Below the pieces are notes generated by a model. It had not been told where the DNA came from. It made no database searches and saw only the letters and a program-made list of their open reading frames with translations. Made by a program: the position numbers and the translations under genes. A stretch of DNA of 64,000 nucleotides from positions 248,001 to 312,000 of IMG/VR virus record IMGVR_UViG_3300021057_000274; one strand, given 5' to 3'. Below, in pieces: positions 22,695-63,486 of the stretch (position 1 is its first letter; each line of letters opens with the position of its first letter).

Positions 22695-22931
22695 GTGTCC
22701 TACGTCATCGAAAGTTCTTGGAAGTGCATGCACTGTGGTCAAGTGACAGAGTTCAAGTATGCTGGTGCCAACCCCGAGTTTTGTAGCAACGTTTGCAAGT
22801 TTAGGTGGCGCGACGAGCGCTGGCAGATCGAGAAGTTAATCGCAGACCTCTCAAGAAAATTTCCCGGTACTAAATTGGCGGATAAGATGCTTTCGCTATG
22901 GGATTCACGACGCAAGAGCGAGAAGCGGTAG
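22695..22931 (+). CDS. Small zinc-finger protein
   Basis: CMHCG...FCSNVC. Confidence 0.5.
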   Translation: MSYVIESSWKCMHCGQVTEFKYAGANPEFCSNVCKFRWRDERWQIEKLIADLSRKFPGTKLADKMLSLWDSRRKSEKR

Positions 22932-23371
22932 TCGCGAGATATCAGCGCAGGATCGAGCTCGGGCGTCTCACGTTTGCACCGATCGGTGTCGGGAATTACT
23001 GCACCGGCACGATCGTGCTAGTGGGAGAGCAAGCTTCAAACCCGACGGAGAAGACCGCCAACCAGCAGCCCTTTTGCTCCGATAAGGGCTGCTCTGGCTG
23101 GTTGAACTTGCTTCTCGAGCAAGAGCAGATTCCAGAGGAGAAGCTCTTCTGGCTTAACGCCAAGAACAACGACGGCACGCTGATTGATCCCAAGGTGATC
23201 GAGAACATCGCACCGAAGGTGGTGATCACCCTGGGAAAGACAGCGTGCGACCTCCTCTCGAGGTCTAACATCTCTTACCTCCACCACTATCATCCGCAGT
23301 ATTGGAAGCGCTTTCGGAACAAGCAGCGTTACCCGCTCTTGGACACTCTCGACGCCTTCGTCAGATACTGA
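22898..23371 (+). CDS. Uracil-DNA glycosylase superfamily protein
   Basis: IVLVGEQAS, F...GCSGWL, WLNA, VVITLGKTA, HHYHPQYWKRF. Confidence 0.6.
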   Translation: MGFTTQEREAVVARYQRRIELGRLTFAPIGVGNYCTGTIVLVGEQASNPTEKTANQQPFCSDKGCSGWLNLLLEQEQIPEEKLFWLNAKNNDGTLIDPKVIENIAPKVVITLGKTACDLLSRSNISYLHHYHPQYWKRFRNKQRYPLLDTLDAFVRY

Positions 23372-31995: not shown

Positions 31996-32193
31996 ATGAA
32001 AAAATACGAACAGCTCCAAACCCCCCGAGAGAAAGCGGCGCACCTCGAGGATCTCATGACTACTCTCTACAGCGGCCTGCGCGGCTGCTGTGGGCAGCTC
32101 CACGCGTACTCAGATAACCGCGAGCTCATCAAGCGCCTGCTCCAGGGAGAGCTAGAGCGCCAACAAGCCATCGCAAAGTGCAGAAGTACCTAG
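31996..32193 (+). CDS. Hypothetical protein
   Basis: ORF in operon. Confidence 0.45.
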   Translation: MKKYEQLQTPREKAAHLEDLMTTLYSGLRGCCGQLHAYSDNRELIKRLLQGELERQQAIAKCRST

Positions 32194-32717
32194 GACCAGA
32201 ACGCCGTGAAGGCACCTACGTAAGCGCAAAGTATAAGCAGAAGTCAGCGATCGATCTAATGGCCTGGGCAACTCTCTGCGGCATCCCCGAGCCGCTCCCG
32301 TTCGCGAAGTATCACACCACGATCCTCTACAGCCGAGTTCAGCTCCCCGCCGCTCACGGCCTCATCTATGACTCACGGAAGAGCGATGAGGTTTGGGAGT
32401 GTATGCCGATCGAGCTCAAGCTCTTCGAGTCACGCGGCCGTCTCGGCGAGGTCGGAAAAGCAGCGCTCTGCCTCGTTCTCAGCGCTCCTCAGATCGAGAA
32501 CATCCACGTGCAACTCCGCGCTGCAGGCGGCACCCACGACTTCGATGACTATGTTCCTCACCTCACCCTCACCTATAAGTGCCCACCCGACTTCGACCTC
32601 ACGAGCCTGCCACTCCCGACCGAGGCTCTCCTGGTAGATCAAGTCAAGGCTGAGCCGCTTGATCTAGAGTGGGCTGAAAAGAAGAAGGTAAAGACCGATG
32701 AGAAGCAAGCCAACTAA
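32178..32717 (+). CDS. acb1: Anti-CBASS nuclease Acb1 (2H phosphoesterase, T4 57B-like)
   Basis: GTYVSAKY, HTTILYSRV, GGTHDFDDYVPHLTLTY, EPLDLEW closely parallel T4 57B (HSTICYSRV, GATHDFDDYTPHITLSY, EPLKLDW). Confidence 0.85.
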   Translation: MQKYLGPERREGTYVSAKYKQKSAIDLMAWATLCGIPEPLPFAKYHTTILYSRVQLPAAHGLIYDSRKSDEVWECMPIELKLFESRGRLGEVGKAALCLVLSAPQIENIHVQLRAAGGTHDFDDYVPHLTLTYKCPPDFDLTSLPLPTEALLVDQVKAEPLDLEWAEKKKVKTDEKQAN

Positions 32718-32961
32718 CTCAAACTACCGCGACAACTATGACGCGATCTTCGGCAAGAAGAAGCCAGAGGTGACCTATGAGCTCTGGCAAGATCATCCCG
32801 GGAGCAACTCCTTCACGTTCATCAGCGAGACGAACGAGTCGTCTAGACGCTCCCTCGCGCCAGACGCGATCCTCCTAACGAAGATCACGTCGTCGTCGTT
32901 CTACCGCGCGAATCAGCTCAAGAACTCCTTCCTCAAGGAGTACACGAAGGAGCACAAGTGA
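32698..32961 (+). CDS. Hypothetical protein
   Basis: Coupled ORF. Confidence 0.5.
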   Translation: MRSKPTNSNYRDNYDAIFGKKKPEVTYELWQDHPGSNSFTFISETNESSRRSLAPDAILLTKITSSSFYRANQLKNSFLKEYTKEHK

Positions 32962-34103
32962 AGGCCGCGATCGACCTGATCTGCCGCAAGCTCGCGTCGA
33001 GCGAGTACTCTCACCAGGTGAGCTGGGCTCACCTCAGGGCCAACCAGCTCCGCAACATCGCGAGAGAGAACCCCGGCTGCGGGATCCCTGAGACGATCGA
33101 GGTCCAGGACTTTGACGGCCCTCGCCACTCCCGCGACTGGTCAGAGTACGACGTCGTCTACATCTACCACGGGATGGACTACAAGCCAGGCCCGTACATC
33201 AACGTCTTCGACGGTTTGGTCGAGCACGCCGCCAAGTTCTTCGAGCGCCTGATCTGGCCGCAGCATCGCCACATCAAGTTCGTCTCGCTCGACATCGAGA
33301 TGCCACCCTACGGTCGTCTCTGTCGAGACAAGAAGGGTACCCGCTCTGCCTACTGGGCGAACGTCGACTGGAACGCGGTGCAAGCCAAGTGCGAAGCGAT
33401 CACCGAGGTCGTCCGCGACCCATGCAAGCACTTCGCGCCGGGCAAGTACCGACATCTCGTGATCGGCGACTCTCACGCGCACTCGGCCTACAAGGCTACC
33501 TCGATGGTTCTCCGCAAGGACGAGCGTACTCTCGCTGGCGTGCTGCGCAAGGGCATCGAGAACGAGATCAAGGAGTACGGCGGTTGGGACATGAGCGAGA
33601 TCGACTCGCTCACTTGTTACTGGGGAAACATCGACATCCGTCACCACCTCTGCCGCACCGCTGATCCGCTTCAGGCGACTCGCGACCTGCTCAAGACCTA
33701 TGAGGACGCGTTGCTCAAGTTGAATCGTCCGATCGAGCTCGTGACGATGCTACCGATCGAGGATGAGTCGCGCCCCCTCCCAAAGTCGGGCTATTACGGT
33801 GATCGCTCTGACAACAAAACGCCCTTCTTTGGCTCTCGCGCTGAGCGCATCAAGGTCATGACCGCCTTCAATGATCTCCTTCGCGAGATGGCTGCGAGAA
33901 ACTCAGGCTGGACGATCTACGAGTGGCCCAAGCTCTGGTACGAAATGGACGGCGTCGAGTTCATGGACACGATCATGGAGCGCCCACGCTCGGTGCATCT
34001 AGCGAGAAAGTACTATCGTTGGGACCTCCTCAACAACGTACCCAACCCGAACCACGCGCCCGCCGCTGTGCCTGTCCCAAAGAAGAGCCTCCTCGAGTTC
34101 TGA
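32958..34103 (+). CDS. SGNH/GDSL-fold protein, putative DNA-modification enzyme
   Basis: VIGDSHAH block I, GNIDIRHH block III, SVHL block V; ends KKSLLEF. Confidence 0.65.
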   Translation: MKAAIDLICRKLASSEYSHQVSWAHLRANQLRNIARENPGCGIPETIEVQDFDGPRHSRDWSEYDVVYIYHGMDYKPGPYINVFDGLVEHAAKFFERLIWPQHRHIKFVSLDIEMPPYGRLCRDKKGTRSAYWANVDWNAVQAKCEAITEVVRDPCKHFAPGKYRHLVIGDSHAHSAYKATSMVLRKDERTLAGVLRKGIENEIKEYGGWDMSEIDSLTCYWGNIDIRHHLCRTADPLQATRDLLKTYEDALLKLNRPIELVTMLPIEDESRPLPKSGYYGDRSDNKTPFFGSRAERIKVMTAFNDLLREMAARNSGWTIYEWPKLWYEMDGVEFMDTIMERPRSVHLARKYYRWDLLNNVPNPNHAPAAVPVPKKSLLEF

Positions 34104-34104
34104 G

Positions 34105-34503
34105 ATGAGCGCTCGGCTCTACAAGTCGCACACCTACGTCGATGACTACACGGTCGTCGTACATGCCACCGGGTTTGACTTGAACGACCACCCGGACCTG
34201 CAAAATGATCTCCACATCAAGTGCGAAGCTATCTTCACTAAGTCGTTTGCGATATTTGACGGCATCGGGATGCTTGAGAACCTTCACACCGCGGAGACCG
34301 CGAGGGCTCTCCTCGATCGGCTCTCTAGCATCTTGACGGAGCAGATGGGGATTGAGGTTAAGATCATTGACTTTCAAGCCTCTTTAGACTTGCTGCACAT
34401 GAGGAATCTCGCTTACTTCAAGGTCAGCATCGATCCAGAGGTCTATAAGAACGCCGGAGCTAAGAGGTTGCTTGAGCTCCTCTGTCAACCAGCTCAAGAA
34501 TAA
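34105..34503 (+). CDS. Hypothetical protein
   Basis: ORF in operon. Confidence 0.5.
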   Translation: MSARLYKSHTYVDDYTVVVHATGFDLNDHPDLQNDLHIKCEAIFTKSFAIFDGIGMLENLHTAETARALLDRLSSILTEQMGIEVKIIDFQASLDLLHMRNLAYFKVSIDPEVYKNAGAKRLLELLCQPAQE

Positions 34504-34533
34504 ATACCCTCACGATGCGTTGCTTGTTAGAAT
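34501..34533 (+). promoter_or_regulatory. TAAAT-N20-GTTAGAAT promoter before ino1
   Basis: Same motif and spacing at 46459 and 62891. Confidence 0.6.
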
Positions 34534-34716
34534 AGCATCGTCGACCTACTCTCTGCTGAGCACAGTCTCGGACGAGCCAAAAGCCGGCAACACCAGGTGG
34601 TGTTGATCGTCGTAAAACTGATTCCGGTTCATAGCGGTCATCTAGGTTCATCCTCCTTGATCGTCGACGCAACGGCCGTGTAGCCGTTTTGAGCAACAGA
34701 CGTACAGGAAGCCAAA

Positions 34717-35859
34717 ATGTCTAAGAAAATTCGTGTCGCCGTAGCAGGCATCGGAAATTGCTTTTCCTCTCTCTATCAGGGTCTCGAGTTCTACAAGGAC
34801 ACCGACCCGGACAGCGGGATCATTCCGGGCGTGATGCACATGCGCATCGGTGGCTATCATCCGGCCGATATCCAGATCGTTGCGGCATTCGACGTCGATC
34901 GACGCAAGGTCGGTCGCCCCGTCGGCGAGGCGATCTTCGCTGCACCGAACTGCGCTCGCGTGTTCTGTCAGGATGTTCCGGACGGACCGATTGTGCAGAT
35001 GGGTCCGGTCATGGATGGGGTGTCGGATTACATGCAAGAGCAGCCAGAGAAGATCGGCTTTCGCGTCTCGAACGAGGAGCCGGTCAACATCGTTCAGGTT
35101 CTTCAAGATACGAAGGCAGACATTCTGATCAACTACCTCCCGGTCGGCTCCGAGACCGCCTCTAAGCATTACGCTCAGTGCGCGATCGCTGCTGGGGTCG
35201 CTTTCATGAATTGCATCCCGGTCTTCATCGCCTCTGATCCGGAGTGGGAGAAACGGTTCATCGAGGCTGGGCTTCCGATCATCGGCGATGACATGCGCAG
35301 CCAGTTCGGGGCGTCGATCATGTCGCAGATCCTCCAAGAGACCGCCTTCGATCGCGGCTGTGACGTGCTCTACCACCAGCAGATCAACATCGGGGGCAAC
35401 ACGGACTTCAACAACATGATGGTGCAAAGTCGGCTGAAGTCAAAGAAGATCTCGAAGGAGAACGTGATTCGCGCTCAGAACGACCTGCGCGGAATCCCGG
35501 TTGACCCCGACGCGCTCTTCGCCGGGCCCTCGACGTTCATCCCGTACCTCAAGGACAACAAGGTCGCGTACATCAATCACCGTCTGCTCGGGTTCGGCGG
35601 CGCTCCGATCGACATCGACGTCAAGCTCTCGGTGCAAGACTCCGAGAACTCGGCGGGGGTGGTGATCGACGCGGTGCGCTACCTCAAGGTCGCGAGAGAA
35701 GAGGGGATCGTCGGCGCTCTGCGCGGACCGTCGGCCTTCACCCAGAAGACCCCTCCACAGCAGATGCGCCTCAACGACGCGAAGGAGGAGTGTGACGCGT
35801 TCGCGAGGCGCGACCTGGCGGCGCTCAAGGCGGTCAACAAGTTCAAGAGCAAGATCTAA
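34717..35859 (+). CDS. ino1: myo-inositol-1-phosphate (inositol-3-phosphate) synthase, bacterial/archaeal type
   Basis: VAVAGIGNCFSSLYQG, VAAFDVD, NYLPVGSE, GDDMRSQFGA, NIGGNTDF, SKKISK, DSENSAG, KTPP. Confidence 0.93.
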   Translation: MSKKIRVAVAGIGNCFSSLYQGLEFYKDTDPDSGIIPGVMHMRIGGYHPADIQIVAAFDVDRRKVGRPVGEAIFAAPNCARVFCQDVPDGPIVQMGPVMDGVSDYMQEQPEKIGFRVSNEEPVNIVQVLQDTKADILINYLPVGSETASKHYAQCAIAAGVAFMNCIPVFIASDPEWEKRFIEAGLPIIGDDMRSQFGASIMSQILQETAFDRGCDVLYHQQINIGGNTDFNNMMVQSRLKSKKISKENVIRAQNDLRGIPVDPDALFAGPSTFIPYLKDNKVAYINHRLLGFGGAPIDIDVKLSVQDSENSAGVVIDAVRYLKVAREEGIVGALRGPSAFTQKTPPQQMRLNDAKEECDAFARRDLAALKAVNKFKSKI

Positions 35860-35870
35860 CCAAGGAATCA

Positions 35871-37097
35871 ATGAGCACCAACTCGATCTACAACTTCAAC
35901 GTCGGAGTACACAGCGCAGAGGAAGCGGCAGGCATGTCGATCCTGGCGATGCAGGAGCGCTTTCGCAAGCTCGGCGTCTCGTTCTTCAGCTGGGAGAAGG
36001 AGATGGTCGTTAACATGCCGAAGAAGCTCTTTCTCGACGAGGTGCTCAGGATCATCGAGGAGCTAGACGAGAGCATCAGCTACACCAACGTGATGGTGCT
36101 CTCGCCTGGCATCGTCGAGATAACGCTCTCGAAGCAACGGCCAGAGAGCATGCTCGAGACCCAGGACGAGCTTCGAGTCTACATCAAGCTCAACAGCTGG
36201 GAGTACTACGACGAGTACGGTGAGGAGACTCAGTTCCCCTTCGTCACCCAAAAGGACGAGATGGTCTGCGTCGCGAACATCGAGGTGATGGGACAGAGCT
36301 GGCTCGCCGAGATCTTCATCCCGAAGCTGCTCGAGTGCGTCAATCAGCACCGCCAGTCCGACAAGATCTCGCTCATCAAGTGGCTCTACTCGTCTCAGCA
36401 TGGCACCGCGAGCAAGGTCTTTCAGATTCGCAAGGACTGGGAGATCAACCCCGTCTACTACCCGTGGCTCAAGCAGCATCTCAGCGAGCTAAACATCGCT
36501 GGGGAGGAGAGCCTTCGTCCCTACTACCACGCCTTCCTCAAGAGCCAGTCACAGATCCTCGTGCTCTTCGGTGAACCTGGCACCGGCAAGACGTCGTTCA
36601 TCCGTGACATGATCTGCGAGATGGGACTCAACGCGCTCATCTCGTACGACCTCAAGGTGCTGACGTCGGATCACACGTTCATCGAGTACCTGACGAGCGA
36701 CATCTTCGACCTGATCGTGGTCGAGGACGCTGACGACCTGCTCACCTCCTCCCGGAGCGAGAACAACAAGGTCATCTCGAAGATCCTCAACGTCTCGGAC
36801 GGCATCATCAAGCTCCCCAAGAAAAAGATGATCTTCACGACGAACTTGCGCGACGTCAGCGAGATCGACAACGCGGTCTACCGTCTCGGTCGCTGCTTCG
36901 ACGTCGTTAACTTCAGAAAGCTCGACCACGTTGAGGCTCAGAGCGTCGCTGACGCGCTTGACATCAAGCTTCCAGAGAAGAAGGGCGACAGCTACGCATT
37001 GTCAGACCTCTTCTTCTTGAAGAACCTCGGGAACAGCGATGATCCGTTCGTCAAGCGCAACGAGGAGCGTCTCAAGAAGAAGCTAGGCTTCGTTTGA
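35871..37097 (+). CDS. AAA+ ATPase
   Basis: GEPGTGKTS, LIVVEDAD, ILNVSDG, IFTTN, RLGRCFD. Confidence 0.85.
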   Translation: MSTNSIYNFNVGVHSAEEAAGMSILAMQERFRKLGVSFFSWEKEMVVNMPKKLFLDEVLRIIEELDESISYTNVMVLSPGIVEITLSKQRPESMLETQDELRVYIKLNSWEYYDEYGEETQFPFVTQKDEMVCVANIEVMGQSWLAEIFIPKLLECVNQHRQSDKISLIKWLYSSQHGTASKVFQIRKDWEINPVYYPWLKQHLSELNIAGEESLRPYYHAFLKSQSQILVLFGEPGTGKTSFIRDMICEMGLNALISYDLKVLTSDHTFIEYLTSDIFDLIVVEDADDLLTSSRSENNKVISKILNVSDGIIKLPKKKMIFTTNLRDVSEIDNAVYRLGRCFDVVNFRKLDHVEAQSVADALDIKLPEKKGDSYALSDLFFLKNLGNSDDPFVKRNEERLKKKLGFV

Positions 37098-37693
37098 CGA
37101 TTCACAATCTCTTTCCGATCCCAATCGGCTCTTACAAGATCGGAAGAGAGCTGACGCTTGATGAGCTAAAGTATCTCGACGGCTTACTAAGACGACCGAA
37201 CGTCGGAAACGCTACCAGTTGCAGCTCAACGATCCTTGAGAGCCAGGAGCTGAGCGAGCTTACAAGGTTCATCCTCGGATCACTTAAGAGCTACTTCATC
37301 CAGGTCTACGACCCGCTCCACGACGTTAAGCTCAAGATCACCCAGAGCTGGTGCAACTACACGAAGCCCGGTCAGCATCACCACAAGCACAACCACGGCA
37401 ACAGCTTCATCTCAGGCGTGTTCTACGTCAAGGCCGACAAGATGATCGATAAGCTTTACTTTTATCAGGACGCGTATCAGCAACTCCAAATTCAGCCCAA
37501 AGTTTGGAATCTCTGGAACGCGCGCTCGTGGTGGCTAGAGGTAGGAGCTGGTGACTTACTCCTCTTCCCCTCTGCCTTGACCCACGAAGTAGCCGCGGTT
37601 GAGGGCACCGAAGAGCGAATCAGCATCTCCTTCAACACCTTCCCCATCGGAATCCTCGGGGACGAGAGAGATCTAACGCTGGTAAAAGTTTAG
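37094..37693 (+). CDS. 2OG-Fe(II) oxygenase (TIGR02466-like)
   Basis: SWCN...HHKHNHGNSFISGVFYV...GDLLLFPSALTHEV...RISISFN. Confidence 0.85.
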   Translation: MTIHNLFPIPIGSYKIGRELTLDELKYLDGLLRRPNVGNATSCSSTILESQELSELTRFILGSLKSYFIQVYDPLHDVKLKITQSWCNYTKPGQHHHKHNHGNSFISGVFYVKADKMIDKLYFYQDAYQQLQIQPKVWNLWNARSWWLEVGAGDLLLFPSALTHEVAAVEGTEERISISFNTFPIGILGDERDLTLVKV

Positions 37694-38470
37694 CAGAGCT
37701 TGAAAGAGCTTAGGTCTGTCGCACGCGTACATCCCAGCGCAGTTTAGGCAATTGTATTCAATCACCTTGAAGCTGCCGTCGGTCATCCGCACGAAGTCGA
37801 CAACGTAGTTTCGAGCTGGCGCGTAGTGAAGCTTGACGACGTTGAAGAACGACGTGACGTCTCGCACCTCGCTAGGCGTCAAGCGCTCGTAAGTGATCTT
37901 CGCTCCGATCTTGTAGACCGAAGAGGTGATAAGCTTGCCGTCAACGACGAAGTTGCGGTACTCCCTCTCCATCCCGTCGACGAGAGTTGCGCACAGCACT
38001 TGCTCGTCGTTCGGATGGTCGGAGAACGATGAGTCTTGGATCGACTTGCCAAAGATCGCGGCGTAGGGAGTTTGACCCTCCTCAACGATCGTGCCGGCGA
38101 ACGCTTTCAAGTCCCGCGTCGGCTTGATGAAGACGGGAGCAGTGACTGGCACGTCGCGAATCGTGCCGAAGCGCGCGAAGAAGGCGTGCGAGTTGAGGAG
38201 CAACTTTCCGAGGGCCTTGTGGTAGAAGGCCTGATCAAACGCGAGCGGGTCATAGTTCACGACGGCGCTGTGCGGAAGCACGCCGCGCTCCCGCATCTTC
38301 AGCATCTTCGTCGATCCGAGCATGATGACTCGGTCGTACTCGTAAAACTTCTCGAGCTCGACGATCTCGTCACTGAATGGGATTAACCCGAACCAGATCG
38401 GATCATGAACTCCGATCGACTGGAGCGCGAGCTGGTTCTCCATCAGCTCTTGCTCGCGCATGTGACTCAA
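37673..38470 (-). CDS. ATP-grasp protein (DUF4343/R2K-like)
   Basis: FIKPTRDLKAFAG, EYRNFVVDGKLITSSVY, YVVDF, VIEYN...AGMY. Confidence 0.8.
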   Translation of the reverse strand: MSHMREQELMENQLALQSIGVHDPIWFGLIPFSDEIVELEKFYEYDRVIMLGSTKMLKMRERGVLPHSAVVNYDPLAFDQAFYHKALGKLLLNSHAFFARFGTIRDVPVTAPVFIKPTRDLKAFAGTIVEEGQTPYAAIFGKSIQDSSFSDHPNDEQVLCATLVDGMEREYRNFVVDGKLITSSVYKIGAKITYERLTPSEVRDVTSFFNVVKLHYAPARNYVVDFVRMTDGSFKVIEYNCLNCAGMYACDRPKLFQALLNFYQR

Positions 38471-38489
38471 CTGAACTCCGAAGGTGATC

Positions 38490-38582
38490 TTAGGGATGTG
38501 ATTTTCTCCAGGGACACCAAACGGATGGCCATTGCGGATGACTAAAGATCGAGCGCTTGCAGTGCTTGCACACGGGGATCAT
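38490..38582 (-). CDS. Small Cys-rich peptide (30 aa, not in supplied ORF track)
   Basis: MIPVCKHCKRSIFSHPQWPSVWCPWRKSHP; ATG 5 nt after minus-strand TACAAT. Confidence 0.4.
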   Translation of the reverse strand: MIPVCKHCKRSIFSHPQWPSVWCPWRKSHP

Positions 38583-38587
38583 GAGAA

Positions 38588-38640
38588 ATTGTAACATCTC
38601 CGTCAACTATTGTACATCGCGTCAAGATCTATGTTAGAAT
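38588..38640. promoter_or_regulatory. Back-to-back sigma70-like promoters sharing palindromic TGTACA
   Basis: TGTACA at 38611-38616; TAGAAT at 38635-38640 (+) and TACAAT at 38588-38593 (-). Confidence 0.55.
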
Positions 38641-38646
38641 TTGACG

Positions 38647-39090
38647 ATGGTAGAGTTGAGAGATCTCGAGCTGAAAGATACAGCGGAGCTTTACGCGCTG
38701 ATCGAGATCTCGCGCAAGGATCTTCTCAATCTCTGGTGGGCGGAGTCAGCGACGTTCGAGTCGACAGCCCAGTTCATCGAGAACGCTAGACGGAGCTCGA
38801 ATCACGTCAAGGCGATCGTCGTTGACGGTCAGATCGCCGGCTGCATCTCTCTCATCGACATGCCAGACGGGAGCTTTCAGCTCGGGTACTGGTTAGGGAC
38901 TCCGCATCGCGGAAAGAGACACATTCAGCACGCGGTCGAGAAGATCAAGACCTTAGCAGAAGCGTACAGGCGTCAGATCATCGTGCGCATCAAGTCCAAG
39001 AACGTGAAGAGCCTGAGCGTCGTCAAGGGCGCAGGCTTCACGCATGTTGGCAACGACGGAGAGTGGACCTGGCACGTTTGGCGGCCGTAA
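38647..39090 (+). CDS. GNAT acetyltransferase (RimJ/RimL type)
   Basis: IAGCISL...LGYWLGTPHRGK...NVKSLSVVKGAGF. Confidence 0.85.
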   Translation: MVELRDLELKDTAELYALIEISRKDLLNLWWAESATFESTAQFIENARRSSNHVKAIVVDGQIAGCISLIDMPDGSFQLGYWLGTPHRGKRHIQHAVEKIKTLAEAYRRQIIVRIKSKNVKSLSVVKGAGFTHVGNDGEWTWHVWRP

Positions 39091-40232
39091 ACATTCTTCC
39101 CGACTTCAAGCAAGATCTGGATCGTAGCCTCATCCCGCAGATCCAGCGCTTCTGGACCAAGATCAACGAGCGTCAGCTCCACTTCATGGGAGTGCCAGGC
39201 TTTGAGACCTACGACACCGACGGAGATGAAGCTCTCGGGCGAGACGTCGAGTTCTTCCACTTCAGCATCTGCGCTGATGCCCGCATGCGCTACCTCGGAG
39301 AGAACTTCGTTCTCAACGATGATCAGCTCCTTGACCCCGTCAACAAGCTCTCTAACGCGGTCGTCGCGCACCTGTACGGCGGCCGTCGGATTTACTCGCT
39401 CTTCACGGGCGTCACTGACCCTCGCAAGGCGTACCTGGACTTTTCGCGAGTGGGAAGTGACCCTGACTACGTCAGGATGGTGCGTAGCAACGCTGAATAC
39501 GCGAAGCTACACGGTTTCAAGTTCTACGGCACAACGGAGCTACACACGTCTCTCCAGACTGCTGCGCGAAATTTCTGCCGAGACAAGTATGGTGATCCTG
39601 GCCGACCCGCAAGCAATGTCGACATTATCGAGTGGATCGCCTCCTGGCGCGACAAGGGGTTATTTGAAGCGCTTCTCGGGGCGACATCACTGGGAGAGAC
39701 CTTTGAGCACATCAAGTCCCTACCAGGAGTTGGCGCATACTACGGATACCACCTCGCCGTAGATTGCTCGCTCTTCCCGTTCACGAGATACCACCATGAC
39801 GAGCCGTTTTGCGTGCCCGGCGGCGGTTGCCAAACGACGTTGAAGATGCTCTTCCCGAGGCTCACCGCGTCGAAGAAGTTTCCCTTCGGCGAGGCGGTGG
39901 TCTGGATCGAGCAGAACCAGAAGGACCTGTTTCCGACGCTCCAGTTCCATCCGGCCCTTTGGAACATCGAGCGAGACGGGAAGAAGGTCTTTCCCTTCGA
40001 GCAGAACAAGCTGATGGTCTACGGTCTCGAGGTCGGGCTTTGCCAATTCGGAGTTTATTGCCACCTCAAGAAGAATCCTCACCTGATCGAGCGCCGCAAG
40101 GTCGGCGTCGATCCTGACCTGACGCCCCTCATCCTGCGAGAGCAGGGCGCGCCAGTTACCCCCGAGGAGCTGCGTGAGCTTCAGAGCGAAGCCGCGGCCC
40201 CGACGGCCACGAAGGGTCTCCTGGAGTTCTGA
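39063..40232 (+). CDS. aGPT-Pplase / amino-acid:DNA-transferase-like base hypermodification enzyme (HhH helical fold)
   Basis: IKSLPGVGAYYGYHLAVD HhH, VPGGGC loop, LEVGLCQFGVY; ends KGLLEF. Confidence 0.7.
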   Translation: MDLARLAAVNILPDFKQDLDRSLIPQIQRFWTKINERQLHFMGVPGFETYDTDGDEALGRDVEFFHFSICADARMRYLGENFVLNDDQLLDPVNKLSNAVVAHLYGGRRIYSLFTGVTDPRKAYLDFSRVGSDPDYVRMVRSNAEYAKLHGFKFYGTTELHTSLQTAARNFCRDKYGDPGRPASNVDIIEWIASWRDKGLFEALLGATSLGETFEHIKSLPGVGAYYGYHLAVDCSLFPFTRYHHDEPFCVPGGGCQTTLKMLFPRLTASKKFPFGEAVVWIEQNQKDLFPTLQFHPALWNIERDGKKVFPFEQNKLMVYGLEVGLCQFGVYCHLKKNPHLIERRKVGVDPDLTPLILREQGAPVTPEELRELQSEAAAPTATKGLLEF

Positions 40233-40432
40233 TGGGTCACTACTCTGAGCAGTACGAAGCTTCCGCTCGCGAGGAAGCGAAGCGCGAGAAGAAGCGTGCT
40301 CGACAGCAGCTGACGGCGATGGCGGAATTTCGCGACCAGCTGATCGGCAACATCGGTGCCGACGGCATCTCGCCGCGGCACCTGGACGCTTTTCAAGACA
40401 TGATGAACGAGACGAAGCTGCGCGCGAGATGA
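40232..40432 (+). CDS. Hypothetical protein
   Basis: TGATG coupled ORF. Confidence 0.5.
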   Translation: MGHYSEQYEASAREEAKREKKRARQQLTAMAEFRDQLIGNIGADGISPRHLDAFQDMMNETKLRAR

Positions 40433-40665
40433 AGCACAGCGAGCTTTTTTTAGACGTGTACATCAAGCCCGTCCAACCAGTCGAGTACTTTACCGTCTCG
40501 GTAGATGTCGGTGACGGCGAGGTGATCGTGCGAGATCTCACGATCTTGAAGAGCCGTAACGCAGATCTAACGCCAGAGCAGGAGAAGCTCTGGGAGATCT
40601 TCGCCTCCGCTGGATTCGTAGCCAGTCGCAAATTTTCAATTAACAAAGACCTCAAGATAGGATAA
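40429..40665 (+). CDS. Hypothetical protein
   Basis: Coupled ORF. Confidence 0.45.
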   Translation: MKHSELFLDVYIKPVQPVEYFTVSVDVGDGEVIVRDLTILKSRNADLTPEQEKLWEIFASAGFVASRKFSINKDLKIG

Positions 40666-40677
40666 AATCTAACAAAT

Positions 40678-41400
40678 ATGCTCACTGGCTCTTACTATAA
40701 GAAGGGCGAGGGGTTCGTGGATGTACCCCTTAAGCAACACAAGACCGGGCTCTACTTCCGTCCTGGCTCCCACGATCGCGCGGCGATCGTCGACTGTACC
40801 GGCGGGCGCGACTACGTCACCGTCAACTGCGCTGGGCACCGCGTCCTCGACCTGGGCGGCAACATCGGCGCGTTCATCTTCAAGGCCGCTAGGGAGGGAG
40901 CAGAGCGAGTACTCTCGTTCGAGCCCGAGCCCAGCAACTTCAAGGTGCTCCAGGCCAACCTCGAGCACGCGATCAAGCCGCTCAACAGCTCGACGATCGT
41001 CGAGGCTCGCCAGCAGGCGGTCGCCGACAAGCATGACAAGCTCGAGCTGATCGTCGGCGGCAGCTACAGCACGGGCACCCCGTCGCTGACCGCCAAGAAG
41101 GGCAAGGACAAGGTCGGCATCCTCGTTGACGTCGTGCCGTTCAAGGAGGTCTGCGAGGAGTTCAAGCCGACGCTCCTCAAGATGGACATTGAGGGCGCCG
41201 AGTACTCGTTCATCTTCGACGGCCTTCCGGAGTCGATCCGCGAGTTCGTCTTCGAGATCCACGGTCAGAACGCTCGCGAGAACGAGCTGATGCACAAGTG
41301 CTGGGAGATGTACACGAGGGACTGGGACGTCGTCTCACGCTTCGATCGCAAGTTCTTCGGTAAGACCCACCTGATCATCGCTCACCTCAAGCGGAAGTGA
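40678..41400 (+). CDS. FkbM-family SAM-dependent methyltransferase
   Basis: VLDLGGNIGAF, VLSFEPEPSNF, LLKMDIEGAEY. Confidence 0.88.
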   Translation: MLTGSYYKKGEGFVDVPLKQHKTGLYFRPGSHDRAAIVDCTGGRDYVTVNCAGHRVLDLGGNIGAFIFKAAREGAERVLSFEPEPSNFKVLQANLEHAIKPLNSSTIVEARQQAVADKHDKLELIVGGSYSTGTPSLTAKKGKDKVGILVDVVPFKEVCEEFKPTLLKMDIEGAEYSFIFDGLPESIREFVFEIHGQNARENELMHKCWEMYTRDWDVVSRFDRKFFGKTHLIIAHLKRK

Positions 41401-41633
41401 CCACGACGCCGATCCTCCCGACCGCGGGGGAGGAGATGACTGGGAATGAGCTGATCGCTCAGCTGCGTGAGCATCAGCTCACGCACAAGATCTGGGCAGA
41501 GTGGTTCGAAGCGCATCCGGAAGATCCTCGACAACACACCGAGGGAATCGGCGACGCGGTCTTCCATCGGCAGATCGAGGCGAAGTACTCAGAGATGATC
41601 CGCTGTGTGCAACGATTGATGAGTGAAGCCTGA
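41397..41633 (+). CDS. Hypothetical protein
   Basis: Coupled ORF. Confidence 0.5.
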   Translation: MTTTPILPTAGEEMTGNELIAQLREHQLTHKIWAEWFEAHPEDPRQHTEGIGDAVFHRQIEAKYSEMIRCVQRLMSEA

Positions 41634-42925
41634 TGCGCGTCGTGATCATCGGACAGCAGCTGAACCGCAACCACGCGGATCGGTTAAAGGGCGGCATTCA
41701 GACCTGTGAGCGCCTCCACGTCAAGCTGCTCAACGAGCTCGGGCACGAGATCCACTTCATCGCGGCCGCCGACACCGAACCCTTCACTCCCCACGCCAAG
41801 CTTCACCTCCTGGAGCTGCCGTCCGAAGAGACGCTCGGCGAGCTCTCGAGAGCTGACAAGGCTAAGGTCAGCCGCCAGAAGACCGTTGAGATCCGTGACA
41901 CGATCAGCGAGATTCGTCCTGACTTCATCATCAACCACAGCTACTCGAGCTCGCACGTCCGACTGCTCGCTGATCACGTCGAGCAGGGAATTCCGGGAAT
42001 CTTCTTCAACCACCAAAATCCAGTCGTCGCGAGCGACATCAGTCTGATCGCCAAGCTCGAGCAGTACATTCGCATGACTAAGCTTGGAGGAGCGCTTGTC
42101 TGCGTCTCTCCGTTCTCCCGTGACCTCTGGCGGAGGGCGATCCGCAAGCGCCTCAAGTCAGCGTCGTTCGCCTTCGTCGAGGAGGAGATGATCGACCAGG
42201 TTTATAACATGGTCTGCCCGCCAGCGTATATCGACCAGGTTAAGGTGTGGCGCTCTGATCCGAGCAACATCTTCGTGATCATCAGTCGCCCGACCAGGGA
42301 GAAGAACGTCGCTGGCTTTCTTGAGGTCTACGAGAGATCGCGTCTTAAGAATCCGGTGGTCATCTTTCTCGCTGTCGGCGGTGACCTCGAGAGCAACGAG
42401 TACTGGTTAGCCGAGCTGAAACCGATCATCGAGAGGCTCAAGGAGCAAGGTGTTCCGATCAAGGTGCGATCGAACGCTCCGCGCGCTGACGTCCTCTCTG
42501 CGCTTGAGACGGCCGCCTTCAACGTCATCCCGTGGGTCGACGAGTCGGCCTCGATCGTCGCGCTTGAGGGGGCTCAGTACGGCACGATCCCGCTCATGAT
42601 GTCGAAGACGCGTGAGGACGGATCACTGACCGGTCACGCGGCCCAATCACTCATCCAGCTCAACTCCCCCTACCTCGAGATGCTCCCAGCAGGTCGCAAG
42701 CATCAAGAGCGCGCGGCAGCCAGGCTTCGCGACACGGTTCAAAGCTACGAGATGAGTTCGCCCGACGAGCAGTACAAGATCAGAAACTATTTGCGAGATC
42801 GTACTCTACGAAAGCACTCGCTTACGTGCCGAGTTAATGATCTTGCTGACATCATGGCTGAGGTGAGATTTCGCGTGAGCTCGCATGCGACGATTCCAGC
42901 CATCGTACGTTTATTGGAGATGTGA
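41633..42925 (+). CDS. GT-B fold glycosyltransferase (GT4-like)
   Basis: MRVVII...GGIQ...LGHEIHF, VCVSPF, ISRPTREKN, ESASIVALEGAQYGTIP; ends IVRLLEM. Confidence 0.8.
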   Translation: MRVVIIGQQLNRNHADRLKGGIQTCERLHVKLLNELGHEIHFIAAADTEPFTPHAKLHLLELPSEETLGELSRADKAKVSRQKTVEIRDTISEIRPDFIINHSYSSSHVRLLADHVEQGIPGIFFNHQNPVVASDISLIAKLEQYIRMTKLGGALVCVSPFSRDLWRRAIRKRLKSASFAFVEEEMIDQVYNMVCPPAYIDQVKVWRSDPSNIFVIISRPTREKNVAGFLEVYERSRLKNPVVIFLAVGGDLESNEYWLAELKPIIERLKEQGVPIKVRSNAPRADVLSALETAAFNVIPWVDESASIVALEGAQYGTIPLMMSKTREDGSLTGHAAQSLIQLNSPYLEMLPAGRKHQERAAARLRDTVQSYEMSSPDEQYKIRNYLRDRTLRKHSLTCRVNDLADIMAEVRFRVSSHATIPAIVRLLEM

Positions 42926-43095
42926 TGACTTTTGATTACGGCCTCATGGCGCAAACGGTGAAAGCTTTCTCAGACGTGATGGAGCAGATCCAGAAATCTG
43001 AGCAGTGTTCTACCGCGATTCGGGTCGGTGCGCTCCAAGCTCAAGCTGGTCTTACTCCGCTGATGAGGGCGATCCTGGAAGAGTATAAGAAGTGA
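42925..43095 (+). CDS. Small hypothetical protein (56 aa, not in supplied track)
   Basis: MTFDYGLMAQ...ILEEYKK fills the gap with coupled start and stop. Confidence 0.5.
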   Translation: MTFDYGLMAQTVKAFSDVMEQIQKSEQCSTAIRVGALQAQAGLTPLMRAILEEYKK

Positions 43096-43475
43096 ACTCG
43101 TTCGACATCGACGGTGTTATCTACATCAGCGCTGAGTTAGGCGGAATCTTTCCAGGACCGCATGACGTGATCATCACCGGGCGCAGCTTCGAGGAGGCTC
43201 CTGAGACGATCGCGATGCTCACTAAGCGTGGCATCTCGAACTACGTCTACTTCAACCCGCTCCCGTTCGCTCAAAAGACTCGGGTATCGTCTGGAGAGCA
43301 CAAGGCCCGCATCTTAAATAATCTAAGAGAACAAGGCATCAAGGTCGGCATTCACTTCGAGGATGACCCGATCCAGGCTCAAGTGATCGCTGATCAAGCC
43401 CCACACGTCGCGATCGTTCTCCTCCAGCATGACCTGACAGAGAGGGAAAATGTCCGTCACCCGATGCCAGACTGA
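43092..43475 (+). CDS. Capless HAD-superfamily phosphatase
   Basis: SFDIDGVI motif I, ITGRS motif II, HKARIL, HFEDDP motif IV. Confidence 0.8.
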   Translation: MNSFDIDGVIYISAELGGIFPGPHDVIITGRSFEEAPETIAMLTKRGISNYVYFNPLPFAQKTRVSSGEHKARILNNLREQGIKVGIHFEDDPIQAQVIADQAPHVAIVLLQHDLTERENVRHPMPD

Positions 43476-43489
43476 CATTTTCTGGGGAA

Positions 43490-43495
43490 TAAATA
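43490..43495 (+). promoter_or_regulatory. Late promoter
   Basis: TAAATA then RBS AGGAG. Confidence 0.65.
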
Positions 43496-43513
43496 AGCTC
43501 ATAGGAGACTTAT

Positions 43514-44149
43514 ATGATCCCAGATCTTCCCGAAAATGGCATTCTCATGCCTAAGATGGTCAACCGGTTTCGTGTCACTTTTCATCGATGTCACAACCTC
43601 AAGCGCGTCGCTGAGGGGCTCAGCCTTCAGGTTCTCGACGTCTCCCTGCCGTCCGTTGATCGGCTCCTCTCCACCTCGCGGAGTCGAGGTAAGAAGGTCT
43701 ACGGGCTCGAGACCGAGGAGGGGGCTCTAACCCTCACGTTTGAGGATGACCTCCAGTCTCGCGCGATCACGGCGATTTATGACGAGCTGATCGTTGATGA
43801 GGGAAACAGCTTCACCGTTCGCGTCGACTTCTTTAACGGCAACGGAGACGTGACCGAGACGTATGAGTTTAGAGGATCAGTCGGACCGATCACCGGCCCG
43901 ATCTTTGATTATTCTGGCGGTGACTCAGGAAATCGCTCCGCCTCGATCAGGTTTCCGAGCTATGTGAACACGACAACCGACGCGCTCAGCAAAGAAACGC
44001 TCGCTCTCATGAAGTTGATCTCGACCGCTGAGCTTAATTACGGTTGGGGTGAGAAGAGGCCGGGGGTAGTGCGCCGTAGCTTGAGCATCAACGTCGGGAA
44101 CGCCTTCACTCACTCCATCGTCACCAAGCGTCCGACGGAGGCGAAATGA
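43514..44149 (+). CDS. Tail-tube (gp19) paralog with C-terminal extension
   Basis: ILMPKMVNRFRVTF, LSLQV, LTLTFEDD, VTETYEF align with ILHPRQKNRWRVIF, LSLQL, CTLTVEDD, VTETWKY of 9943..10539. Confidence 0.7.
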   Translation: MIPDLPENGILMPKMVNRFRVTFHRCHNLKRVAEGLSLQVLDVSLPSVDRLLSTSRSRGKKVYGLETEEGALTLTFEDDLQSRAITAIYDELIVDEGNSFTVRVDFFNGNGDVTETYEFRGSVGPITGPIFDYSGGDSGNRSASIRFPSYVNTTTDALSKETLALMKLISTAELNYGWGEKRPGVVRRSLSINVGNAFTHSIVTKRPTEAK

Positions 44150-45354
44150 GCTTGAAGTGGGGAACGATCGTTCCGCTCATCGGCGGGCTCACCTTGGCTG
44201 GAAAGCGAGCGACCGGCCAGGACCCAAACTTCCTCCTGACATATACGCCGTTCGGAGAGAACGAGAAGAACGTGCGCGCCTACTTCCCGAACGTTCCCTA
44301 TCACCAGCTCGACACCGAGGACCGCGGCGGCTTCGACGTCGCGGCGAACAGAGACGTTGACTTCGTTCAGGCCCTCTGTCCCTGCGCCGGACTCTCGCTG
44401 CTGAGCTCAGGCTCCCCCGAGCAGCGCGCTAAGCAAAACTACTGGATGCTCGAGACCGCCAAGTTCATGACGGGCGAGCTTCGTCCGCGGGTCTTCTGGG
44501 GCGAGAACGCTCCGGGTCTCTATAGCAACACCGGCGAGCACGTGCGTAACGAGCTCCGCCAGATCGGGGAGAGGAACGGCTACTCGTTCTCCGTCTACGC
44601 GACGTCAACTCACTTCCACGGAATTCCTCAGACCCGCAAGCGCACGTTCTACTTCTTCTGGCGTGACGGTGAGGCGCCGGTGATGGAGTACTACCGAAAG
44701 CCTGTCAAGAACTTCACCGAGTACATGCGTGAGGTGCCGAAGGACTCGATTCACCACACCGCCGACGACATCCAGGCGGCGCGTGACACTCTCAACACCA
44801 ACCCGTTCATCATGTTCCTCCAGGAGAAGCATGACGGCAAGGGCATCGAGAAGATGCGCGAGTGGCTGGTGCGAAAGGACATGAAGAGCTTCACCCTCAA
44901 CACTTACCTGTTGCTCAGCGAGCAGTTCGAGGAGTGCATGGACTGGCTGAAGCAGCGCGGCCACGACAAGCACCTTCGTCTCGCTCAAAAGGTCTGGGAG
45001 AAGGTGACCTCGAAGGGCGGCTTCTGGGACGGCAGCTTCCCGATGTATCGCGGCGACCTGATGTTCGCGACCCTCATCTCTCGGACGCTCTACGCGATTC
45101 ACCCTGAGGAGGAGCGCGTTCTGACGACACGCGAGATGATGCATCTGATGGGGATGCCGCATGACCTGCCGTTGGTGACGGGCGGCTTGAATCACATCTG
45201 CCAGAACGTGCCGGTGTCGACGGGCGCTGACATGACTAACGAGGTGATCGCTTACCTGAGGGGCGAGCGGGAGAGCAGCGGGGCGCGGTTCACGATGCAG
45301 AGCAACATCACCCAGCGCATTGACCACAGCGAGTCGGCGCTGCTAAGCTTTTAG
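44146..45354 (+). CDS. C5 DNA cytosine methyltransferase-like protein
   Basis: CPCAGLS (motif IV), GENAPG (VI), IPQTRKRTF (VIII), LTTREMMHLMGMP (IX), CQNVPV (X); ends ALLSF. Confidence 0.85.
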   Translation: MSLKWGTIVPLIGGLTLAGKRATGQDPNFLLTYTPFGENEKNVRAYFPNVPYHQLDTEDRGGFDVAANRDVDFVQALCPCAGLSLLSSGSPEQRAKQNYWMLETAKFMTGELRPRVFWGENAPGLYSNTGEHVRNELRQIGERNGYSFSVYATSTHFHGIPQTRKRTFYFFWRDGEAPVMEYYRKPVKNFTEYMREVPKDSIHHTADDIQAARDTLNTNPFIMFLQEKHDGKGIEKMREWLVRKDMKSFTLNTYLLLSEQFEECMDWLKQRGHDKHLRLAQKVWEKVTSKGGFWDGSFPMYRGDLMFATLISRTLYAIHPEEERVLTTREMMHLMGMPHDLPLVTGGLNHICQNVPVSTGADMTNEVIAYLRGERESSGARFTMQSNITQRIDHSESALLSF

Positions 45355-62893: not shown

Positions 62894-62923
62894 ATTCCTA
62901 GCTCTTCCAGAGTGTGTTAGAAT
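62891..62923 (+). promoter_or_regulatory. TAAAT-N20-GTTAGAAT promoter before dCMP deaminase
   Basis: Same spacing as 34501 and 46459. Confidence 0.6.
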
Positions 62924-62931
62924 TTCACTCT

Positions 62932-63486
62932 GTGAGACAACGAAAATCTCTCGATGAAACTTATCTCAGAATGGCTGAGGAGCTGGCGGACGGTAGAGTC
63001 TACGCCACCCGAGCTCAGGTCGGCGCCCTCCTGGTCAAGAACAAGACCATCATCGCCGAGGGATACAACGGCATGCCCGAGGGGTTTCCGAACGAGGACG
63101 TCGAGTACGTTGACGCGGAGGGGAACCTCCGTACGAGTCCCCTCGTTATTCACGCCGAGGCCAACATCTTCGACAAGCTCTCGAAGAACGGCTCGAACGC
63201 TGGTGCTCGTGACGCTACTCTCTATTGTAGCTTTTCTCCTTGCGTTCCCTGCGCTCTCCGCATCATCAATAACAGGGTCAAGAGGGTCGTCTTTCGAAAC
63301 CTATATCGGGACGTCACTTGCTTCGAGTATCTCAAGAAGGCCAACATCGAGATCGTTCACCTGCCATCCAGGGAGACCGTAGATGTCGAATCAGTGCGCG
63401 CTTCTCCACCCTATTTCTCGCGGAGTTGGAAGTTTCTCGCCGAGATTATCGCTCGTGTCAGTCGTCGTGGATCGCGAGCGTCGTAA
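62932..63486 (+). CDS. dCMP deaminase
   Basis: YLRMA, QVGALLVK, GYNGMP, IHAEANI, SPCVPCA, RVVF...YRD. Confidence 0.93.
   Translation: MRQRKSLDETYLRMAEELADGRVYATRAQVGALLVKNKTIIAEGYNGMPEGFPNEDVEYVDAEGNLRTSPLVIHAEANIFDKLSKNGSNAGARDATLYCSFSPCVPCALRIINNRVKRVVFRNLYRDVTCFEYLKKANIEIVHLPSRETVDVESVRASPPYFSRSWKFLAEIIARVSRRGSRAS

Follow-up and report, generated by a model that had tools for sequence, protein, structure and literature searches.

A polymerase-like C-terminal tail on predicted DNA-modification enzymes of a jumbo phage and its probable role in tethering them to the sliding clamp

Genes of the locus and their C-termini

The stretch analysed here (the window) comprises 64,000 nucleotides, positions 248,001 to 312,000 of the IMG/VR record IMGVR_UViG_3300021057_000274, which belongs to a 390-kb jumbo phage. 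It contains a cluster of genes for predicted DNA-modification and small-molecule enzymes, of which four end in nearly the same short peptide. The features are as follows.

32958-34103 (+), SGNH/GDSL-fold enzyme (381 aa) with an N-terminal domain of unknown function, ending in a Pro/Ala-rich linker plus KKSLLEF (tail codons 34083-34100)
34717-35859 (+), inositol-3-phosphate synthase homolog, no tail
35871-37097 (+), AAA+ ATPase, no tail
37094-37693 (+), 2OG-Fe(II) oxygenase, no tail
37673-38470 (-), R2K ATP-grasp, no tail
38641-39090 (+), GNAT, no tail
39063-40232 (+), aGPT-pyrophosphorylase-like (HhH glycosylase-like) group:DNA transferase candidate (389 aa) without a kinase P-loop, ending ...AAAPTATKGLLEF
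40678-41400 (+), FkbM-family methyltransferase, no tail
41633-42925 (+), GT-B glycosyltransferase (430 aa), ending ...AIVRLLEM, an F-to-M variant of the tail
43092-43475 (+), small HAD/PNK-phosphatase-like protein (127 aa), no tail
44146-45354 (+), C5 pyrimidine DNA methyltransferase-like enzyme (402 aa) with a PC catalytic motif, ending ...HSESALLSF

A sequence-only reading had noticed that the four modification enzymes share an LL(E/S)(F/M) ending and had proposed that it tethers them to the sliding clamp. To verify whether the observation was real, the open reading frames (ORFs) were re-examined. All four exist and match the gene calls of the source record. Their ends are ...PVPKKSLLEF (stop 34101-34103), ...PTATKGLLEF (40230-40232), ...PAIVRLLEM (42923-42925) and ...HSESALLSF (45352-45354). 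Among 638 six-frame ORFs of at least 30 aa in the window, LL[ES][FM]-COOH occurs only on these four, and the relaxed pattern [LIVM][LIVMF][EDQSTN][FWYM]-COOH adds one spurious antisense ORF. In 117.6 kb of this genome (186 greedy ORFs) the strict motif is expected 0.0135 times, giving a Poisson P(>=4) of 1.4e-9, although this value is post hoc because the motif was defined from the data. The shared ending is not a DNA repeat: the Leu-Leu codons are CTC CTC, CTC CTG, TTA TTG and CTG CTA, and the downstream DNA is unrelated. A fifth carrier, a 125-aa ORFan (L011:12746-13123) ending ...PQPSTAVPTPKGLIQF, lies among replisome genes about 9.5 kb beyond the right end of the window.

The fold assignments of the four enzymes mostly hold. 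The AlphaFold model of the SGNH-like enzyme (pLDDT 89.8) matches many GDSL enzymes, esterases and acyltransferases among them, with a Foldseek probability of 1.0 and a target TM-score of 0.5-0.6. The GDSH and GNID blocks are invariant or nearly so, whereas block V was not resolved. The aGPT-like assignment is supported by Pfam HMUDK_hel (1.3e-12) and by a best PDB structural match to the PaMx11 gp46 5-PmdU glycinyltransferase (8Z2N) with Z 10.7 over 230 residues, followed by OGG-type glycosylases at Z 6-8.4. These Z values are modest for a helical protein. The block H-D-E-x-F-C-x-P-G of this family (H245-D246-E247-x-F249-C250) is invariant. The glycosyltransferase label rests on Pfam Glyco_transf_4 and Glycos_transf_1, and that of the C5 methyltransferase on Pfam DNA_methylase (PF00145, 7.5e-15) and TIGR00675, together with the sequences ...ALCPCAGLS... 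and ...GENAPG.... Of the untailed genes, the inositol-3-phosphate synthase homolog was recognized by TIGR03450 (1.3e-109) and Pfam Inos-1-P_synth, the HAD-like protein by phrog_415, the FkbM methyltransferase by Pfam and TIGR01444, and the accessory genes at 35871-39090 by Pfam. The models put the tails outside the folded domains: residues ~365-381 of the SGNH-like enzyme have a pLDDT of ~58 and residues 381-389 of the aGPT-like enzyme have a pLDDT below 50. This indicates that the tails are unstructured.

Conservation and covariation of the tail

To examine whether the tail is under selection, homologs of the four families were compared. In the aGPT-like family, 103 of 120 homologs at 38-70% identity keep a tail after a polar spacer of divergent sequence (13-64 residues across 91 homologs). 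Covarying tails were carried by 70 homologs of the SGNH-like enzyme, and twelve orthologs of the C5 methyltransferase-like enzyme have tails of the locus type (SSLLEF, STLLSF, LDEFML, MSSYFQ). Representatives of the glycosyltransferase family end LLIEF, SLMEF, NLLDF, PLFEF, TLLEF, DLIEW, NTLF, SLEDFFS, IEDFFV and SVFDMFGG, and thus span the same spectrum, although in some relatives these tails are looser (RELIRY, KALWE). The tail is therefore conserved in all four families.

Subsequently, the tails of unrelated proteins were compared within 78 related loci (numbered with the prefix L). They match within a locus and differ between clades, and in at least three independent clades the family B DNA polymerase (PolB) carries the same tail variant as the SGNH-like, aGPT-like and C5 methyltransferase-like enzymes of the same locus. 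In L128-L165, PolB ends ..STSLF, the SGNH-like enzyme ..TSLF or ..NSLF and the aGPT-like enzyme ..NALF or ..QTLF. In L175/L176/L185 the corresponding ends are ..ATLEDFF[TV], ..NTLE[ED]FFV and ..NTLEEFFV, with ..LDEFML on the C5 methyltransferase. In L147, PolB ends ..SLEDFFG, the aGPT-like enzyme ..LSSFFD, the SGNH-like enzyme ..VENFFS and the C5 methyltransferase ..MSSYFQ. In the nearest clade (L111-L116) and in the syntenic L292 all tails are of the LLEF type, whereas in L166-L183 a divergent full-length PolB lacks the tail and so do the enzymes. An unbiased tail-similarity scan of every ORF in these loci returned almost only PolB, the C5 methyltransferase and two unknown ~400-aa LLEF proteins. 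Permuting PolB among clades reached the observed similarity in 12 of 720 permutations, or in 3 of 120 in a conservative version. As the number of independent clades is small, the P value is only about 0.02.

The predicted small-molecule enzymes of the module behaved differently. The inositol-3-phosphate synthase-like protein, a core member that presumably makes a small-molecule precursor, is present in 75 of 78 related loci and is never tailed. The HAD-like protein, also a core member, is present in 70 loci and is never tailed, and the FkbM methyltransferase, a frequent accessory, is present in 37 loci with non-motif ends such as GYDCWFKK. This fits the corollary that the tail marks DNA-acting enzymes.

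To find out whether the tail class is confined to clamp clients in a complete genome, Aeromonas phage 44RR2.8t was scanned. The pattern L[DEF]x[FLM][FYM] in the last 10 residues of 1,066 ORFs hit only gp43B, gp33 and the aGPT-like fusion ORF233c, and gp55 carries it within its last 12 residues. In addition, the PolBs of group 2.2 jumbo phages end FDSLFGW, FADLFGF or GFLEW(I), the last being close to LLEF/LLEW.

A probable tether to the replication clamp

The C-termini by which T4-type phages hold the clamp have been described as hydrophobic and acidic peptides that follow divergent linkers of variable length and are interchangeable between proteins (reviewed in PMC2988020). T4 gp43 ends ASLDFLFG and gp55 PSLDFLYEAND, whereas 44RR gp33 ends NTLDFLM and gp43 NNLFDMFDI. 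The tails SLLEF, GLLEF and ALLSF share with these the extreme C-terminal position outside the folded domain, the hydrophobic and in part acidic composition with an aromatic residue, the divergent linker and the presence on several unrelated proteins of one genome. The glycosyltransferase ends in Met, but most of its family ends in F or W. The tails differ in that the carriers are DNA-modification enzymes rather than polymerase or transcription factors, and in that LLEF is strictly terminal and shorter than the T4 SLDFLF or RB69 SLFDMFDF epitopes. The phage encodes a T4-type clamp loader, as gp44-like (phrog_168, 1e-67) and gp62-like subunits lie about 3 kb beyond the end of the window. No clamp was recognized in 118 kb of this genome, although the lineage (group 2.2 jumbo phages) typically has one (PMC7824862).

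Taken together, the comparative evidence suggests that the LL(E/S)(F/M) ending is this lineage's version of the T4-type clamp-binding epitope, and that the four enzymes most likely ride the replication clamp and modify DNA as it is copied. This reading is well supported but by comparison with related genomes only: PolB, gp55, gp33 and the clamp of this phage were not found in about 64 kb beyond the window or in two targeted scans, so that an LLEF-type tail has not been seen on a polymerase of the LLEF clade itself, and physical binding, co-replicative timing and the chemistry of the modification are inferred. Each enzyme has a folded catalytic domain, a flexible spacer of about 10-60 residues and a peptide of 4-6 residues, which would dock in the hydrophobic pocket on the C-face of the PCNA-like clamp. 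That would keep the enzyme on newly replicated duplex DNA, so that bases are modified immediately behind the fork, before host nucleases can reach unmodified DNA. The tail behaves as a portable address, which is carried by whichever enzyme of the module acts on DNA, including non-homologous enzymes swapped into the same gene slot. The clamp-tether proposal of the sequence-only reading is thus supported, but its term modification machine overstates the evidence, which shows independently tethered clients rather than a complex.

It is possible, though unlikely, that the tail docks on a shared hub other than the gp45-type clamp, such as the host beta-clamp (DnaN), the phage SSB, the clamp loader or the AAA+ ATPase of the cluster, and that PolB uses the same hub. 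The clamp gene was not found in about 128 kb of this genome, an AAA+ ATPase sits inside the cluster here and in L292, and the SLF-type tails of one clade (QNALF, QQTLF, INSLF) resemble what is probably the bacterial beta-clamp motif, QL[SD]LF. Terminal acidic-aromatic ends such as -E-F may also occur on SSB-type tails that dock on partner proteins. However, in T4 and RB69 the homologous PolB, gp55 and gp33 tails are experimentally clamp-binding (PMC2988020), and the T4-type (RFC-like) loader implies a phage clamp. The four tails of the window have no Gln at -5 and have E or S at -2, where QLxLF has Leu, nor does any of them fit the PIP box Qxx[LIVM]xx[FY][FY]. The AAA+ gene is absent from most tailed loci (1 of 78), and the gp32-like SSB of this phage has its own unrelated C-terminus. 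It is still less likely that the tail is a degradation, regulatory or sorting signal that times or places the enzymes without tethering them to DNA. Hydrophobic C-terminal peptides can presumably act as degrons, the genome encodes an 830-aa AAA protein downstream of the window, and the present data do not measure binding. Nevertheless, in related genomes the same tail sits on the replicative polymerase and, in 44RR2.8t, on gp33 and gp55, where its function is known to be clamp binding. It is absent from the metabolic enzymes of the same operon, which would need the same timing, and from structural and packaged proteins in the window. Coincidence, composition or a DNA-level repeat, suggested only by the 4-residue length and post hoc definition of the motif, is effectively refuted by the statistics, the differing codons and downstream DNA, and the conservation and covariation across hundreds of homologs in four families.

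Relation to known modification systems

That a phage DNA-modifying enzyme works at the fork by holding the clamp was proposed for T4 alpha-glucosyltransferase and gp45 (Sommer et al., 2004, cited in PMC6024577). This interaction was not reproduced in a 2025 preprint (bioRxiv 10.64898/2025.12.06.692756), although that study used C-terminal His tags. T4 alpha-glucosyltransferase (...KEQFDIITK) and beta-glucosyltransferase (...AFKKAIDL) have no polymerase-like tail, whereas the enzymes described here carry an explicit, conserved and covarying one. In the thymidine hypermodification clusters of phages M6, ViI, PaMx11 and PhiW-14 (5-HMUDK + aGPT-Pplase/AADT; PMC5889632, PMC8989533) an HhH glycosylase-like group:DNA transferase with a conserved Cys/Glu block acts post-replicatively on DNA and is accompanied by tailoring enzymes. 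In the present cluster no P-loop 5-hmdU kinase was found, nor was a hydroxymethylase (gp42/Td homolog) in the 118 kb searched, about two thirds of the genome not having been examined; gp42-like genes occur in 17 related loci. The partners also differ, being inositol-3-phosphate synthase-like, HAD, SGNH, GT and C5 methyltransferase-like. No prior description was found, and the main text of PMC8989533 uses neither the word clamp nor replisome.

More tentatively, the tail could define a clamp clientome in T4-like and jumbo phages, in which any enzyme that must act on nascent DNA acquires the tail variant of the polymerase, as do non-homologous enzymes swapped into the same slot. Reading C-termini against the PolB tail would then predict which orphan phage enzymes work on DNA. 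On this reading the core module (inositol-3-phosphate synthase-like, HAD, aGPT-like and SGNH-like, with optional GT, C5 methyltransferase and FkbM) installs a so far undescribed hypermodification on a pyrimidine C5 position, possibly cyclitol- or sugar-derived, co-replicationally.

Whether phage DNA modification is physically coupled to the replication fork has been argued for T4 since 2004 and was recently contested. The present data give sequence-level evidence for such coupling, as four or more unrelated families of DNA-modifying enzymes carry a tail that in related genomes is the polymerase's own and co-evolves with it. They also offer annotators a simple rule, namely to compare C-termini with the PolB tail in order to separate DNA-acting from precursor-making enzymes in hypermodification clusters. 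Finally, they flag a widespread, uncharacterized modification module that is found in more than 70 viral contigs, from marine T4-likes to a 390-kb jumbo phage.

Tailed enzymes and their genomic setting

The window is part of a jumbo myovirus contig of about 390 kb (IMGVR_UViG_3300021057_000274, also ENA ERZ27257322 k141_1025171). Its large terminase is only 44% identical to that of Ralstonia phage RsoM2USA and 39% identical to that of PA5oct-like phages, and a megablast search of the region against cultured phages gave no match. The window carries T4-like structural genes, a gp32-like SSB, UvsX, UvsY, UvsW and ribonucleotide reductase. Just beyond its right end lie a T4-type clamp loader (gp44-like, phrog_168 at 1e-67, plus gp62-like) and two separate small ORFs that match different parts of Pol III alpha (phrog_11127 and phrog_11778; L010:11554-12087 and L010:18690-19274, where L010 is a stretch of flanking sequence), i.e. 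the split minimal Pol III alpha. This combination marks the 'group 2.2' jumbo phages, which have a T4-like replisome with a family B polymerase (PolB), an RFC-like loader and, typically, a PCNA-superfamily clamp (PMC7824862). The window further encodes an Acb1-like 2H phosphoesterase that is possibly an anti-CBASS protein (32178-32717), a Thg1-like tRNA-His guanylyltransferase (58107-58868) and a dCMP deaminase (62914-63486).

Four ORFs of the window, which match the gene calls of the source, end in a shared short tail:

32958-34103, SGNH-like protein with a predicted GDSL/SGNH fold, ending KKSLLEF
39063-40232, aGPT-like protein, ending TKGLLEF
41633-42925, GT-B glycosyltransferase (GT), ending VRLLEM
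44146-45354, C5 DNA methyltransferase-like (C5-MTase-like) enzyme with the Pro-Cys motif, ending SALLSF

To examine whether this ending is particular to these proteins, 638 six-frame ORFs of at least 30 aa in the window were scanned, and the strict motif occurred only on these four. In 117.6 kb of stitched genome the motif is expected 0.0135 times, which gives a P(>=4) of about 1e-9, although this is a post hoc figure. The codons for the shared residues differ and the downstream DNA is unrelated, so the ending is not a repeated DNA element. A fifth carrier was found among replisome genes about 9.5 kb beyond the right end of the window (L011:12746-13123, in a further flanking stretch). It is a 125-aa ORFan without a family that has a folded-looking N-terminal part, a Pro/Ala-rich linker and KGLIQF at its end, and it is a candidate non-enzymatic clamp client, possibly gp33-like. 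A different, T4-style L-D-x-F tail (PLLDTLDAFVRY) was observed at the end of a 157-aa ORF (22898-23371, +) immediately upstream of the gp32-like SSB. This ORF has no family hit and could be another clamp client.

The protein at 32958-34103 had no Pfam hit. However, a confident model (pLDDT 89.8) has a GDSL/SGNH fold in its C-terminal half, and the family keeps GDSH and GNID blocks, so that the SGNH label of the sequence-only reading holds. The protein at 39063-40232 hits only the helical domain of 5-hmdU DNA kinases and has no P-loop. Its best structural match is the PaMx11 5-PmdU glycinyltransferase, an aGPT-Pplase2 (Z 10.7), ahead of HhH glycosylases, and it carries an invariant HDExFC block that is reminiscent of the catalytic Cys/Glu described for that family (PMC8989533). 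Profile searches against PDB sequences for the SGNH-like and aGPT-like families gave nothing.

Around the four genes sit untailed genes, namely an inositol-3-phosphate synthase homolog (MIPS-like; 34717-35859, 1e-109), a small HAD-like protein (43092-43475), an FkbM methyltransferase, an AAA+ ATPase, a 2OG oxygenase, an ATP-grasp and a GNAT. The S-B43 CmoX carboxymethylcytosine cluster is a different system.

Conservation of the tail and its covariation with the PolB tail

In the aGPT-like family 103 of 120 homologs at 38-70% identity end in a recognisable hydrophobic(-acidic) tail. Of these, 64 have the form Phi-Phi-[EDQ]-[FWY]-COOH (mostly CLLEF), 20 have a T4-like L-[DE]-x-F-[FI]-x form and 6 have xLF-COOH. 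The tail is preceded by a polar and charged spacer of 13-64 residues that is divergent. An exhaustive search of the GT family showed the same spectrum (LLIEF, SLMEF, NLLDF, PLFEF, TLLEF, DLIEW, NTLF, SLEDFFS, IEDFFV and SVFDMFGG), and LLEM is therefore an F-to-M variant of LLEF. The terminal Met codon of the GT lies directly before a TGATGA stop/start overlap with the next small ORF (42920-42927), which may constrain the last residue and could explain M in place of F.

To investigate whether the tails of unrelated proteins change together, 78 viral loci (numbered L) were collected with an alignment of aGPT-like proteins. These loci define a conserved core of MIPS-like (75 loci), aGPT-like (74), HAD-like (70) and SGNH-like (70) genes. 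FkbM (37), a C5-MTase-like gene (12), a GT (2) and, usefully, PolB are often nearby. Within a locus the tails of unrelated proteins agree, whereas they differ between clades.

Table. C-terminal tails of PolB and of the modification enzymes by clade (a dash marks an empty entry)
L128-L165: PolB ..STSLF / ..ASALF; SGNH-like ..TSLF / ..NSLF; aGPT-like ..NALF / ..QTLF; C5-MTase-like -; GT -
L175, L176, L185: PolB ..ATLEDFF[TV]; SGNH-like ..NTLE[ED]FFV; aGPT-like ..NTLEEFFV; C5-MTase-like ..LDEFML; GT -
L147: PolB ..SLEDFFG; SGNH-like ..VENFFS; aGPT-like ..LSSFFD; C5-MTase-like ..MSSYFQ; GT -
Nearest clade L111-L116: PolB not in locus; SGNH-like SLLEF / MLLDF; aGPT-like CLLEF; C5-MTase-like SSLLEF / STLLSF; GT DLLSWN
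Syntenic jumbo relative L292: PolB not in locus; SGNH-like GSLLQF; aGPT-like CLLEF; C5-MTase-like STLLSF; GT RELIRY
L166-L183: PolB divergent, full-length, no hydrophobic tail; SGNH-like no tail; aGPT-like no tail; C5-MTase-like no tail; GT -

In the nearest clade two unrelated proteins of ~400 aa occupy the GT slot and end NNLLEF and KSLLEF; one of them has a weak T4 beta-GT hit. In the clade L166-L183 the enzymes of the module lack the tail and the neighbouring PolB, which is full-length but very divergent (about 818 aa, 24% identity to the PolB of locus L175), also lacks a hydrophobic C-terminus. The aGPT-like protein is longer in this clade (487 aa). The MIPS-like, HAD-like and FkbM proteins never carry a tail. 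An unbiased tail-similarity scan over every ORF in these loci returned essentially only PolB, the C5-MTase and the unknown LLEF proteins. When PolB was permuted among clade representatives, the observed similarity was reached in 12 of 720 permutations (3 of 120 in the conservative version), a test that is limited by the small number of clades.

Tails of clamp clients and the search for the phage clamp

To verify whether the tail is found on known clamp clients, the complete genome of Aeromonas phage 44RR2.8t was examined, which carries the aGPT-like domain in a 795-aa fusion, ORF233c. The pattern L[DEF]x[FLM][FYM] within the last 10 residues of 1,066 six-frame ORFs hit only three proteins: gp43B (NNLFDMFDI), gp33 (NTLDFLM) and ORF233c (CSLDGLFAI). 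gp55 (NLDNFYEDEPET) carries it slightly further from its end. T4 gp43 and gp55 end ASLDFLFG and PSLDFLYEAND. Polymerases of group 2.2 jumbo phages end FDSLFGW, FADLFGF or GFLEW(I), the last close to LLEF/LLEW, and about 150 other T4-like polymerases end [ST]FDxLFxF[ED]. The T4 epitopes have been described as short hydrophobic and acidic C-termini after divergent linkers of variable length, interchangeable among gp43, gp55 and gp33 (PMC2988020). That is the architecture found here.

PolB, gp55, gp33 and the clamp of this phage were not retrieved within the 9 kb to the left and about 55 kb to the right of the window that were read, or by two targeted scans. The flanks yielded the clamp loader, the split Pol III alpha fragments, the ligase, a bactofilin-like protein and a PrkA / DUF444 / SpoVR trio (like the yeaG-yeaH-ycgB stress operon) followed by rIIA/rIIB (L293:7046-14702, again flanking sequence). 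There is no synteny with phage Paride beyond the loader. An alignment-based scan returned 80 other contigs and a codon-biased KKKRY...RSDT DNA pattern returned 104 other contigs, but these motifs proved variable between clades. A local gp45 profile search of 118 kb of this genome found nothing significant. Of the ORFs considered as the clamp, a 217-aa protein is zinc-finger-like and a 230-aa protein is unknown. A 211-aa ORF (43514-44149, +), which lies inside the modification cluster and overlaps the start of the C5-MTase gene, has a predicted tail-tube (gp19/Phage_TTP_2) fold by ESM Atlas structure comparison (TM about 0.6) without a sequence-family hit, an odd location for a tube-like protein. 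The ligase tail has no motif. This is uninformative, because T4 ligase uses a different, 'unique' mode of clamp interaction according to the title of Shi et al., 2018 (listed in PMC7824862).

A possible clamp tether on DNA-modification enzymes

The only phage precedent is the interaction of T4 alpha-glucosyltransferase with gp45 (Sommer 2004, cited in PMC6024577). A 2025 preprint could not reproduce it, although C-terminally His-tagged enzymes were used, and T4 alpha-GT and beta-GT have no polymerase-like tail. The main text of one thymidine-hypermodification paper (PMC8989533) never uses the words clamp or replisome, and full-text searches found no description of clamp-binding tails on hypermodification enzymes or of this MIPS-containing module. 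The tail would thus be a known type of docking peptide on new classes of client, with clear comparative support.

The tail might instead dock on another hub, such as host DnaN or the AAA+ ATPase of the cluster, or it might be a degron or sorting signal. Both are less likely, mainly because the same peptide sits on the polymerase in related genomes, and in 44RR2.8t on gp33 and gp55, where its function is known. The same argument speaks against chance.

As to the modification itself, the inositol-3-phosphate synthase homolog and the HAD-like protein co-occur with the aGPT-like and SGNH-like genes in more than 70 loci, whereas in 44RR2.8t the aGPT-like fusion instead sits next to a Na+/solute symporter (L007:9100-13080, in the 44RR2.8t genome). 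This hints at a cyclitol- or sugar-derived DNA modification.

On comparative evidence, without binding data and without the polymerase and clamp of this phage itself, the best-supported reading is that the tail is the lineage-specific clamp-binding epitope, and that it tethers DNA-acting modification enzymes to the sliding clamp behind the fork. The sequence-only reading had proposed that the four enzymes form a replisome-coupled modification machine, but a machine in the sense of a stable complex is not shown. On the clamp-tether reading, the presence or absence of the tail would divide the module into DNA-acting enzymes and precursor-making enzymes.
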